Both the position numbers and the translations under genes were made by a program. Positions 28,640 through 55,216 of a stretch of DNA of 64,000 nucleotides are shown piece after piece. The notes beneath the pieces are model-generated. The model made no database searches and was not told where the DNA came from. It saw only the letters and a program-made list of their open reading frames with translations. Source of the DNA: Magallana gigas (taxonomy: Eukaryota). Location: contig NC_088853.1 in NCBI RefSeq assembly GCF_963853765.1, positions 23,498,001 to 23,562,000 of the forward strand, in the 5' to 3' direction. Within the stretch, counting starts at the first letter, position 1, and each line of letters starts with the position of its first letter.

Positions 28640-28783
28640 TTATATATATGTAAAGATGTACAACCTTGATTTACCACCACACAACTCATTACTGTTCCCA
28701 CGACAGGGCGTATTGCAGTCTCCATCCGGCGCAGAAGTAGGTGGATTCAGAATTTCATTTCCGCAAAAGCAAAATTCACCATA
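28640..28783 (-). CDS. Gene 1 exon 5: WSC domain, C-terminal half and stop
   Basis: YGEFCFCGN...DGDCNTPCRGNSNELCGGKSRLYIFTYI*. Confidence 0.85.
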   Translation of the reverse strand, partial: YGEFCFCGNEILNPPTSAPDGDCNTPCRGNSNELCGGKSRLYIFTYI

Positions 28784-31700
28784 CTGAAAAACACATCATC
28801 GTAAACTTGCACTTTTGGATATGAATATATGATGTGTCCAACAAAAACGACCATTTAAAAAAAAAGTTTGTACAGTATTGTTGTAAAACATATTTTTCAT
28901 ATTATTAATATGCATGTATATAAGCAAAGTTCTTTTTTGTATCAAATGACATAACAAATTATGAATGATAATCTTTTCGTTTGTCCACTCTCTAAACTTG
29001 TTATTTTCTACCCAATATTATTTTTCTGAAGAAGTTGTAATATTCATATCAAATATGCAATGTACATACAGAATAATGCTTTAAGTATTTGGACAAAATG
29101 GCGGCTCCTTTACATTTGCGACAGAATAAGGTAAAATTTCTTTCATCCAGTTTTCATATTTAAAATATCTTTAGAACTAAAACTTACTAATTTCTTTGTA
29201 AGATTTATTTAAACAATATTTTATTATGTAAAAAAAATATAACATAATATGATTTGGCAGCAGGCAATCTGCCTATTTGAGCCCTCTCCTTTGTTTGTTT
29301 TCTTTGTAAGATGACTTTTTAGTCAAAAGACATTTTGTAAACGTCGAGAATTTGCCTGTTACAGGCTAAATACATACAATGGTTTAATTTTAGTCCAGAA
29401 GAGCTGGATTTCACAAATATAATCTTCCTTGGTCTCTATTCTACTAGCTCTTCCTTGATGTTTTCTTTTGATTAGAAGCCAAATATTTTCGATGATGCTG
29501 ATGTCAGGGCTCTTTGCCTGCCAGCTCATTCGTCTTAGGTTATTGCTATGTTAGCTTCACACTATTTTTAAACCCTAGGGCAAGGAAAACTACTTCACTA
29601 TAAGCGTCGATTTATTATGAGCGTGTTGGCTATAATCGTGTTTTATACTGTAAATAATCCTGGGTGGAAAGCTCACGACGTACCGGATCATATCGTATTG
29701 AAAAACTTCTATTTTGGAAAATGATTGGCTAAAACAGGGTACAAATTGTCATCTAATATCTTTTGATATTGCAAACATTAATGTTACCGTCAACTCATAT
29801 ATAGGGCCGACACCTTGCCATGTGAGACACCCCCTAGTCATCACTTTGTAACAGGGCTATGCCTTTTGTGCTTCCAACAAATCGGGTCCTTAGCCATTGG
29901 CTCCCGCATGAAAATCCTTTACAGTAAGCCTTTGCTTTTACGGCATCAAGACAAACGTTTTGACTATTACTACTACTACGCTTTTTCAAACTCCCAGCTG
30001 TAGATCTTAGTATATGCAAGGCATTTGACATGGCAATGGTTTTACCCGCCTCCAAAGATTTCTGAGTGATTTCTTTTACCAACTTTTTTACTTCTTTTCC
30101 GCTGCGACAATTTTTTTTACGATGACCGAGGTTTGTTTACAAAAGCAGATGACATTAAAACTCGTGATATTTAAAATGACATTGTTGCAATGTAACACTA
30201 ATAAATGCGTTGTAAACATGCCGCCGTTTCGTCCAAATACTAGTACATATTGCATCAGACTTTATTTCCTAAGACTATACAAACCCGCAGGCCGTAATAT
30301 TTAAAGTTGTTTTGGTGTCGGAGTAAACAATAGTCTTCACATTCATGTTCTCCATTAGGCTTAATACTATATTGTCCAAATTCTAGAACATCCTGATTGT
30401 AATCGTATTTAAAACATCCCAATTTTTCTAAATGGAAAAAAAAAGTTTCAATTGAATCATGTACATGTACTTATACATGTATATTTCTAAATAGTCTTGG
30501 AAAAGAGAATGTTGCTTTTACGATCACATATCTTTGATGAAATAACTCTTCATTATGTGTATGTTTTTTGCATTGTTTTTAAATTGAATTTTTGTTAAGT
30601 TTTTTTTTTTTGGTGGAGTTGGGAGGAAGGGTTAATCAATTAAAAGATTGTTGACTCTTGACCGAAATTTGAATGCTTATAAGTTTCTATTTCTAAAAAA
30701 AATTATATACACACAATTACCTATGATAATATATTTCTTTAATAAATTTTTATTTCCCAGTAAGCTTTCAATATGATTTGGAATTTTTTTTCTACTTAAA
30801 AATTATGTTTCAGAAACTGAAAGAAAGTGAAAGGCATGATTGTAAAAGGTATGCCTTACAACCCTTCGAGAAAAGAAAAGAAGGGATACCGTTAAAACAT
30901 CTGCAATGGAATGGAGGATATTAATATATCCTTTTAGGGAATTTAAAGAATAGTTCCAGAACAATAATCATTTATAAAGCAACTGTTAAACATCGATTTT
31001 TTAACGATACGATTTGATTTTTCCCCCTAAATACAATTTATACTTCTTAGTGTTAGCATAGGTTTAATGTGTTGGAAAGTCAGCTTGTCACGTTATCTTA
31101 CGTTTCATTGTGCACTTCAAATTTGTCTTCCAAGATCCATCAGGGCAACAGACAAAACGCTCAGAACCTTGAGGCTTGTATCCGGCAGAACAGGTAATAT
31201 GAATTCCTCTTTCTAATCCAATGGCATCCCATTCCCTAACCTTTTCCATCGAGAAACGTTCATTTGAAGGTATACCACAATCTGTTAATTAAAAATGAAA
31301 CATCAATTTTCGGTTATTAATATAAGTTCTTTTTTGGATGCGTGAAATAAATGCTATAAAAAGATCTTACCAAATATTGAGGGATGTCTAAAATAGCCGA
31401 CAATTGAGATGTTATCATAATAAAGAGTTTATAGAAATAAAGGTGATGTCCGTTTAGTGCCCTGCACCAAGTTTCTTTTTATACGTACATCTAATAAAAA
31501 GATCCTTATAAGTGTCTATTAATTTATCTACATTATTAAATATTTTGATTGAAAAAAAAAAATGTGAGATTTAACGTGATTGTCTCTTTCACCGTTATTT
31601 GTGACACAAAAAATATATGAAAATGAAGAACCTGAAATGACACAGCTGAACTGTCCAAAAGGTTTTGGAATGCACTTTTCATTCATGGAACAGTTTGACA

Positions 31701-54619: not shown

Positions 54620-54657
<38 letters not shown>

Positions 54658-55216
54658 TTATAAAAGCTAGCGTATGGGATAAACTTTCAACGATTCTGTT
54701 TTGATATTTTATACAATGATATGATTTTTGTTTTATTAATAAAGTTATTTTTAAAAAAATGCTGTTGTAATTTTCGATGAAGTAACAAGGCCAAACAGTA
54801 TATCAATTTTTATAAAAGAAACCTGATGTTATTCATATGTTATATCAATCAATGATATAAATATACCTGAATCCATCTATAATACTTACCTTTTTCCAGT
54901 CCTCTACATCACTGTATATCCACCCTGGCGTTTTTATAAACCGATCAGGTACAGTTGTCCTGTTTTCAAAGTTGGTCTGACAGAAATGGGCTCCCTGGTG
55001 GTAGTTGACGGACCGACATCGCGTTGTTCTTAGACAATCCTCCACACAATCTAGAATACTGTATTTATCATGCGACGTTATCATCCTTCTGTCCAACTTG
55101 TGTCCATACTGTAGCATTGAGTAGCCATGTCGAAGGTCAGCAAAACAGCTATTGATAAGCATAAGCGCAAAACAGATCCTTAAACTTAGGCGCAGATTAT
55201 CGTAAAGAGGATACAT
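48477..55216 (-). CDS. Gene 2: secreted PAN/Apple-EGF-like-Sushi(CCP)-WSC protein, 294 aa, 5 exons
   Basis: Exons 54890-55216, 52345-52435, 51804-51983, 50311-50453, 48477-48620. Exon lengths and phases are identical to gene 1, and the frame is open to TAA. The true start is MYPL (ATG at 55216); the ORF-track start at 55234 is a GTG. Confidence 0.85.
48901..50280 (-). mobile_element. Degenerate Tc1 element in intron 4 of gene 2
   Basis: Orthologous to 29067-30258 with the same TIR remnants; retains ~300 bp that unit 1 lacks. Confidence 0.7.
50311..50453 (-). CDS. Gene 2 exon 4: WSC domain, N-terminal half
   Basis: LGCFENDYRHDIL...ECEDFCLRYHQNNFKYYGLQ. Confidence 0.85.
51089..51634. mobile_element. 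Kolobok-like insertion specific to gene 2 intron 3
   Basis: TTAA on both sides (51085-51088 and 51635-51638); weak TIR agtagatcca / tggagttacc; absent at the homologous site ~30935. Confidence 0.65.
51804..51983 (-). CDS. Gene 2 exon 3: Sushi/CCP domain
   Basis: DCGIP...ITCSAGYKPQGSERFVCHPDGSWKTNLKC. Confidence 0.85.
52345..52435 (-). CDS. Gene 2 exon 2: EGF-like module
   Basis: Protein identical to gene 1 exon 2. Confidence 0.8.
53158..54660 (+). mobile_element. Cg_HINE-like non-autonomous Helentron carrying Cg170-like satellite monomers (gene 2 intron 1)
   Basis: 5' acaggaggcccatgggccacatcgctcacctgag; subTIR pair gctcacctgag / ctcaggtgagc; 3' hairpin aaagctcacttgagcttt; (GACA/GACG) microsatellite; about five degenerate ~165-bp repeats. 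Unit 1 keeps remnants at 32340-32406 and 34893-35047. Confidence 0.8.
54890..55216 (-). CDS. Gene 2 exon 1: signal peptide + PAN/Apple domain
   Basis: SILDCVEDCLRTTRCRSVNYHQGAHFCQTN; donor GTAAGT. Confidence 0.9.

Follow-up and report, generated by a model that had tools for sequence, protein, structure and literature searches.

The VIgL proteins of Biomphalaria snails, which comprise the FREPs, CREPs, and GREPs, combine an immunoglobulin superfamily stalk with a fibrinogen, C-type lectin, or galectin head (PMC5433772). In oysters, the lectin CgCLec-CCP binds a MASP-like protease and triggers C3 cleavage (PMC8605247). WSC domains have the PAN/apple fold and are marked by eight cysteines and a CGG motif in a long L5 loop, and some of them bind beta-glucan (PMC9024836). 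Bivalves depend on large and fast-evolving sets of innate recognition molecules, and oyster disease is an economic problem. Functional studies have dealt almost entirely with individual C-type lectins, C1q proteins, and fibrinogen-related proteins, and the WSC domain has, to our knowledge, hardly been studied in animals outside KREMEN and polycystin. Here, a 64,000-nucleotide window of the genome of the oyster Magallana gigas (OY970745.1 of assembly GCA_963853765.1, 23,498,001-23,562,000; 33% G+C) was analyzed, in which two tandemly arranged genes, designated genes A and B, encode proteins with PAN/apple, EGF-like, Sushi (complement control protein [CCP]), and WSC modules. Both belong, as WSC-headed members, to a family that has to date been encountered only in oysters (Ostreidae) and in which a cassette of three exons (phases 0, 1, and 1) is joined to one of at least five lectin-type heads. 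All positions below refer to the window.

Gene models, domain architecture, and transcripts

Manual splicing and translation revealed that genes A and B are real tandem paralogues, both on the minus strand and with five coding exons each (Table 1). The exon lengths are the same in both genes (327/91/180/143/144 nucleotides [nt]), the intron phases are 0, 1, 1, and 0, and all introns are of the GT..AG type. These results agree with the initial annotation, made from the sequence alone, which had described two intact genes with the same exon sizes, spliced in frame to 294 amino acids and occurring once per ~20-kb unit. In the first two units, five cysteine-rich open segments per unit lie on the minus strand. 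The predicted products are cysteine-rich proteins of ~30 kDa that share 84% amino acid identity, with 90% identity between the coding sequences. The mature gene A and B products contain 22 and 20 cysteines, respectively. The two found only in gene A are C73 in the PAN domain (codon 35378-35376), which also occurs in the related protein P0115, and C185 (31144-31142), which adjoins the third Sushi cysteine; they could form an extra disulfide or provide free thiols. Upstream of gene B, an out-of-frame ATG at 55224, 8 nt ahead of the start codon, opens a 12-codon overlapping upstream open reading frame, and no AATAAA or ATTAAA occurs in the 400 nt past the stop codon (48077-48476). Gene A has no upstream ATG, and an ATTAAA lies 219 nt past its stop codon.

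The gene A product is identical to the RefSeq protein XP_065934122.1 (P0129; "uncharacterized protein [Magallana gigas]"), and the annotated gene has the same five-exon extent; the gene is therefore not hidden, as had been supposed. The gene B product had no identical counterpart among the proteins fetched. A B-like gene is present in an older annotation as a 251-amino-acid model (XP_011418508.2).

Both products have the same domain order, comprising a signal peptide, a PAN/apple domain, a four-cysteine EGF-like module, one Sushi/CCP module, and a C-terminal WSC domain. The WSC domain (PF01822) was recognized in whole XP_065934122.1 with 56.5 bits (cut-off, 27.8; E value, 3.2e-15) at residues 202 to 284, covering positions 2-82 of the 82 in the profile, and its second half, encoded by exon 5 alone, scored 36.6 bits in gene A and 36.7 bits in gene B. 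Residues 200 to 294 of both copies contain eight cysteines, with the motif ELCGGK in A and ELCGGE in B, and the best solved WSC relative of XP_065934122.1 is KREMEN1 (E value, 1.3e-5). The Sushi module (PF00084; cut-off, 20.7) scored 23.7 bits in gene A and 26.0 bits in gene B for exon 3 alone and 20.3 bits, just below the cut-off, in the whole protein. Its residues C141, C170, C184, C196, and W190 are invariant or nearly so across the family. The PAN_1 profile (PF00024; cut-off, 21.4) matched exon 1 alone with 23.5 bits in A and 30.7 bits in B; the score in whole XP_065934122.1 was 17.7 bits, below the cut-off, and those of relatives were 25 to 33 bits. The PAN scores are borderline but consistent, and the four-cysteine core of the domain does not vary across the family alignment. 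The EGF profile (PF00008) gave 19.6 bits for exon 2 of both genes, under the cut-off of 21.5, and was matched only at positions 1-22 of 32 with four cysteines rather than six, so exon 2 is best called a truncated EGF-like module.

Structure comparisons bear on the same modules. In the AlphaFold model, which is confident over residues 45 to 200, the PAN fold (residues 38 to 107) matched the N-domain of HGF (Z score, 6.3), plasminogen and Sarcocystis SML-2 (6.2 each), and the apple domain of Toxoplasma TgMIC4 (5.8). The Sushi fold (residues 138 to 200) matched a CCP of factor H with a Z score of 7.2 and a root mean square deviation of 1.9 Å over 58 residues. A profile of the cassette from 22 family members retrieved CCP modules of CR1, CR2, beta2-GPI, C1s, C4BP, and factors H and B from the PDB, with E values down to 1.6e-12. 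A Foldseek search of the whole model against the PDB gave no match at an E value of ≤0.001, and the domain-level matches came from an exhaustive aligner. Of the PAN-EGF-Sushi-WSC architecture proposed initially, the PAN, Sushi, and WSC domains are upheld by Pfam, by the family profile against solved structures, and by fold comparison, with Pfam recognizing both Sushi and WSC, and the EGF domain is reduced to a subthreshold four-cysteine fragment.

The N terminus has a hydrophobic core at residues 14 to 22, followed by a small-residue -3/-1 motif, C-x-A, ahead of D27 that is conserved in the family alignment. No second hydrophobic or transmembrane segment was found in the product of gene A or B. 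The mature protein would comprise 268 amino acids with two N-glycosylation sequons. The leader, the cleavage motif, and the lack of a transmembrane segment fit the secretion proposed initially, and the products of genes A and B are probably secreted.

Transcript contigs of four public runs were compared with the stretch 29760-35750 of gene A. The runs holding part of gene A carry 12% to 17% of its sampled words, which is about the exonic share of the stretch. Junction 35268|31722 was present in contigs of run X1, which is RNA on record, and of run X3, and junctions 31632|31281 and 31102|30427 were present in X3 contigs. The observed joints, which come from two studies, read CT..AC on the plus strand and lie exactly at the predicted boundaries. 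Three of the four gene A junctions, which the initial annotation had left to be confirmed, were thus found in public contigs, and the fourth, between exons 4 and 5, is supported indirectly because the WSC profile was matched in full only across that junction.

Two introns of gene A attracted further coverage. Within intron 1, the contig depth at 32760-34900 was very high in all four runs, with recurrent joints from 32915-32921 to 33820-33824 and many loose ends; this is probably an abundant transcribed interspersed repeat that is unrelated to gene A. Intron 4 contains an element at 29760-30087 (copy at 49535-49837) with a conserved open frame at 29815-30003, which was covered by contigs of X1, X2, and X3. 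This coverage may derive from unspliced RNA, DNA carry-over, or a repeat. X2 contigs also covered 30130-30305, across the exon 4 donor.

An oyster stalk family with alternative heads

A library-wide search with exon 1 (PAN) returned 107 relatives, and two word searches listed many more. A word search limited to the WSC part of XP_065934122.1 gave no candidates despite the known relatives, and this blank carries no weight. Every relative bearing a species name belongs to the Ostreidae (Magallana/Crassostrea, Saccostrea, and Ostrea). Dozens of oyster proteins share the signal-PAN-EGF-like-Sushi cassette, which is alignable over ~200 residues. An alignment of 22 members with five head types has 17 invariant columns and all 12 framework cysteines, with 39% to 90% identity to gene A. 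The heads verified by hmmscan are WSC (P0115, P0136, P0125, P0140, and P0016), SUEL_Lectin, a rhamnose-binding lectin domain (P0118, P0008, and others), F5_F8_type_C, with or without extra EGF repeats (P0116, P0031, and many more), Fibrinogen_C (P0123, P0041, and P0205), and Lectin_C (P0126, P0028, and others).

The SUEL-headed P0008 gene, located on the same chromosome 8 Mb away, has exons of .../91/183/263 nt, with a single head exon joined in phase 1. The WSC-type protein P0136 (XP_034322005.2; 292 amino acids, 60% identical to gene A) is encoded on the other strand, 10.7 kb beyond the left edge of the window, by exons of 330/91/180/137/141 nt with phases matching those of genes A and B. 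Among three loci outside the window that were inspected, P0136 and P0008 resemble genes A and B in that the head follows the Sushi exon across a phase-1 intron. Such an arrangement is consistent with the exchange of heads on a constant stalk through exon shuffling.

The initial annotation knew of no named gene with the PAN-EGF-Sushi-WSC architecture. Such genes are already annotated in M. gigas, Crassostrea angulata, Crassostrea virginica, and Ostrea edulis, and they are uncharacterized rather than unknown. In addition to XP_065934122.1, they include XP_034322005.2 (M. gigas), XP_052693402.1 (C. angulata), XP_078330843.1 (C. virginica), and LOC125661567 (O. edulis), which have the same signal-PAN-EGF-like-Sushi-WSC order at 45% to 60% identity. 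Several sister models end after exon 3 despite WSC exons downstream. In a syntenic cluster of C. angulata, the adjacent loci LOC128174118 (L004:9947-19593) and LOC128174116 (L005:10013-15920) each contain all five exons. Their annotated proteins of 186 and 204 amino acids read through the exon 3 donor (...KRKIT and ...KRKIM, respectively); downstream of it, WSC exons 4 and 5 can still be found and aligned. Several M. gigas models stop likewise. Either these loci are systematically underannotated, or the read-through models represent a genuine short isoform that lacks the head. The family also carries misleading RefSeq names ("aggrecan," "neurocan," "versican core protein," "notch homolog," and "jagged-1," among others), and the present result flags both these names and the truncated gene models.

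Literature searches on the domain combination in oysters and on the LOC, UniProt, and XP identifiers retrieved no description of the family, and PAN/apple and Sushi domains are absent from a 2025 review on the C-type lectins of bivalves (PMC12842671). The PAN-EGF-CCP stalk family with interchangeable lectin heads is apparently undescribed. The single PAN-EGF-Sushi-WSC architecture is not new, and the wider family is the main new result.

The tandem array and divergence between the copies

Self-BLAST of the window resolved a colinear tandem unit of ~20.1 kb (Table 1). The initial annotation had placed the start of the third unit at 55457, and the self-comparison supports a third unit with its boundary at ~55444. 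A tblastn search with family exons found no third gene in the window and only one family exon relic in 55444-64000. A third gene is not expected there because the visible part of unit 3 is the gene-free half, and, if any exists, it would lie beyond the window edge.

The window contains three N runs (22822-22953, 41467-41606, and 42922-43093). The latter two lie between the gene A start (35594) and the gene B stop (48477), more than 5.8 kb away from every exon; they interrupt neither an intron nor a reading frame, and the units align colinearly on either side of each run. A public record compared with 18640-45594 of the window has equal length and exactly 444 differing positions, which equals the count of Ns over this stretch, so that at this spacing the flanks run on without a break. 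The N runs appear to have been masked at their true length and not to be gaps of undefined size. The first and third runs occupy a matching relative place in units 1 and 2.

The two complete units differ in how far their halves have diverged. The gene-free halves (15749-27394 versus 35832-47209) are 92% to 98% identical, and the gene-bearing halves (27422-35819 versus 47309-55441) are 80% to 88% identical. Synonymous divergence between genes A and B is ~0.3 in exon 1 and 0.11 to 0.16 in exons 2 to 5, with a dS of 0.24 over the coding sequence. The sharp shift in identity, together with the divergence of exon 1, suggests gene conversion or unequal crossing-over and a mosaic history of the array.

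Amino acid change between the copies is unevenly distributed. The ratio of nonsynonymous to synonymous change (pN/pS) is 0.22 in the signal peptide, 0.25 in the PAN domain, 0 in the EGF-like exon, which has no amino acid change, 0.31 in the Sushi module, and 0.79 in the WSC domain. The WSC value compares with 0.24 elsewhere, and the ratio of nonsynonymous to synonymous differences is higher in the WSC domain (Fisher P = 0.01). For the two sequences compared, this pattern fits a WSC head under relaxed or partly diversifying constraint on a conserved stalk.

Decayed PAN and WSC exons accompany the intact genes (Table 1). These extra pieces were considered as alternative exons or a second gene and were rejected, as all carry stops or frameshifts. 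With PAN and WSC exon relics in every unit, the array is evidently evolving by tandem duplication with birth and death of copies. A direct repeat of 600 bp (7479-8078 and 15114-15719; 95% identical) looks like the long terminal repeat pair of a Gypsy element. Its right copy stops 19 nt short of the left edge of unit 1, and the retroelement marks the end of the array.

Table 1. Coordinates of genes, exons, tandem units, and exon relics in the window
Feature	Position	Strand	Description
Gene A	28640-35594	-	294 amino acids; coding exons 35594-35268, 31722-31632, 31281-31102, 30427-30285, 28783-28640
Gene B	48477-55216	-	294 amino acids; coding exons 55216-54890, 52435-52345, 51983-51804, 50453-50311, 48620-48477
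Gene A exon 1	35268-35594	-	Signal peptide (~residues 1-26) and PAN/apple, four-cysteine core C57, C61, C67, C79
Gene A exon 2	31632-31722	-	Truncated EGF-like module, four cysteines; protein sequence same in gene B
Gene A exon 3	31102-31281	-	Sushi/CCP module; phase 1-1 exon
Gene A exons 4 and 5	28640-30427 (30427-30285, 28783-28640)	-	WSC domain, divided by phase-0 intron
Tandem unit 1	15738-35831		Carries gene A; ~20.1 kb; self-BLAST colinear blocks
Tandem unit 2	35832-55443		Carries gene B; two N runs in intergenic half
Tandem unit 3, start	55444-64000		Gene-free half; 15738-16261 = 55444-55952, 20970-22821 = 60814-62660, 22954-24174 = 62785-63999
Decayed PAN exon relic	19287-19555	-	Frameshift and stops; unit 2 copy 39322-39652; tblastn matches over two frames
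Second decayed PAN exon relic	36335-36611	-	~0.8 kb upstream of gene A; copies 16316-16534, 55957-56127
Decayed two-exon WSC relic	25150-25594	+	In-frame stops and frameshifts; unit 2 copy ~44960-45404

Proposed function and relation to known systems

On balance, we lean, with modest confidence, toward the view that the secreted products of the tandem paralogues A and B bind polysaccharide through the WSC head and share a function that resides in the stalk. The head would most likely recognize a beta-glucan-type or other microbial or algal cell wall glycan. The conserved stalk would supply a function common to all members, either docking to a shared partner or self-association, and a possible partner is a MASP-like protease/C3 system or a haemocyte receptor. 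Sugar binding is proposed because the relatives carry four well-known carbohydrate-recognition domains in the same position. In this respect the carbohydrate-recognition idea of the initial annotation holds up, given the lectin-headed paralogues and the WSC domain itself. The family context argues for a soluble glycan-recognition role, and genes A and B may have an immune or opsonin role. The two ligand-binding ends also proposed are unlikely, since the PAN-EGF-Sushi part is constant across five head types and evolves under purifying selection. This part resembles a shared stalk or adaptor, with the C-terminal domain alone as the variable recognition end.

Several observations weigh against polysaccharide binding by intact, expressed genes. 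The WSC domain of KREMEN1 is part of the Dickkopf/LRP6 complex, and sugar binding by WSC domains is not guaranteed (PMC9024836). The AlphaFold model cannot be relied on for the WSC part, where the predicted local distance difference test score (pLDDT) is <45. The WSC pN/pS is below 1 and would be explained by relaxation alone; the family can therefore be called diversified only tentatively. Gene B has the out-of-frame upstream ATG and lacks a canonical poly(A) signal in the 400 nt past its stop codon. That runs X2 and X3 are RNA is a guess, and coverage also extends into intronic stretches of gene A. Finally, in the raw poly(A) RNA run X21, of which ~1% was sampled, no reads fell on gene A exons, and expression may be low or restricted.

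Glycan binding could also serve purposes other than immunity. The proteins might be mucosal or matrix lectins for food capture and sorting, with microalgal beta-glucans as ligands, or act in the mantle and shell matrix or in gamete or larval adhesion, and the same domain evidence would apply. WSC and C-type lectin domains occur among secreted mantle proteins that respond to low pH (10.1101/2023.01.19.524809), bivalve C-type lectins function in nutrition, byssus formation, and biomineralization, and lectins are present in pallial mucus (PMC12842671); moreover, nothing here ties genes A and B to haemocytes or infection. We nevertheless consider a nonimmune role unlikely, as the fibrinogen C-terminal, C-type lectin, F5/8 type C, and SUEL heads are classic invertebrate pattern-recognition domains and one CCP-bearing oyster lectin drives C3 cleavage (PMC8605247). 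It is less likely still that the WSC domain binds proteins, as it does in KREMEN, and that the products are extracellular signaling regulators or adaptors instead of lectins. KREMEN1, the nearest solved WSC relative, would be the precedent for such a role, and PAN, EGF, and CCP are all common protein-protein modules. However, the Kringle, CUB, and transmembrane segments of KREMEN are all absent, paralogues with the same stalk bear bona fide lectin domains in place of WSC, and rapid tandem turnover with head-biased change would be unusual for a developmental regulator.

The array might instead be duplicative debris, with one or both copies, especially gene B, becoming pseudogenes. Three decayed family relics are already present in each unit, gene B has the irregular flanks described above and no identical protein among those fetched, and the WSC pN/pS of 0.79 is in line with decay. 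Yet neither reading frame is interrupted in any of its five exons, the splice sites are canonical, and the 20 framework cysteines are all retained; in addition, pN/pS is low outside the WSC domain and zero in the EGF-like exon. Public runs contain spliced gene A sequences, a B-like model exists in an earlier annotation, and orthologous five-exon loci are retained in C. angulata, so that decay is quite improbable. An assembly artifact, in which two haplotypes of one heterozygous locus were joined head to tail, is scarcely credible. Oyster genomes are highly heterozygous, and units 1 and 2 are similar enough in their intergenic halves to raise the question, but the gene-bearing halves differ by many indels as well as in identity, and the dS between genes A and B is well above the expectation for alleles. 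Three units are visible, adjacent paralogous loci occur at the syntenic C. angulata cluster, and older M. gigas annotations contain several distinct LOC genes of this type.

If polysaccharide-binding heads on a common stalk are the right reading, one stalk with five alternative heads would illustrate how an established effector route acquires new recognition specificities, and the binding partner of the stalk would offer a concrete handle on the family. A soluble WSC-headed protein would also be a new place to seek beta-glucan or algal-glycan recognition. A more ambitious form of the proposal, which we put forward tentatively and as doubtful, is that the family is an oyster counterpart of the snail VIgL proteins, in which at least five unrelated heads have been attached to a PAN-EGF-CCP stalk by phase-1 exon shuffling to give a combinatorial repertoire of soluble recognition proteins, all acting through one downstream partner (possibly MASP-like/C3), with the WSC array as the glucan-sensing arm. 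The array would then be a rare case of the WSC domain as an animal humoral lectin.

Comparison with known proteins places the oyster family apart from each of them. Fungal Wsc1, the Serendipita beta-glucan lectin WSC3, and vertebrate KREMEN1/2 share the eight-cysteine WSC domain with the CGG motif (PMC9024836). The oyster WSC proteins lack the transmembrane segment and Ser/Thr-rich stalk of Wsc1, the tandem WSC repeats of WSC3, and the Kringle and CUB domains of KREMEN. Of the KREMEN layout (Kringle-WSC-CUB plus anchor), only WSC matched: the Pfam scan detected neither a Kringle nor a CUB domain, and the N-terminal leader is the sole hydrophobic segment. Selectins have the order C-type lectin-EGF-CCPn-transmembrane. 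They resemble the oyster proteins in combining lectin, EGF, and CCP modules, and E-selectin was among the weak Foldseek matches, whereas the oyster order is reversed, with a C-terminal head, and the oyster proteins have an added PAN domain, a WSC head, and no membrane anchor.

CgCLec-CCP is likewise a soluble oyster lectin with a single CCP adjoining a carbohydrate-recognition domain, and it is the only tested oyster precedent for a CCP stalk that couples recognition to complement. It differs in having a C-type lectin head with CPD/WPD motifs and no reported PAN domain, whereas XP_065934122.1 has no Lectin_C match and bears a WSC head. The C-type-lectin-headed oyster members inspected have NPD, RPD, or EPN with WND in place of CPD/WPD, and CgCLec-CCP, which was considered as a member of the family, is at most a candidate. 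The VIgL proteins differ in that the oyster stalk is PAN-EGF-CCP, with no immunoglobulin domain found by Pfam in XP_065934122.1, and in that the oyster heads include WSC, SUEL, and F5/8 type C domains. The relation is one of analogy, not homology, and somatic diversification and parasite binding are not known for the oyster family. In their constant N-terminal module set with alternative lectin heads, their solubility, and their expansion in a mollusc lineage, the VIgL proteins are nevertheless the closest design analogue of the oyster proteins described here.

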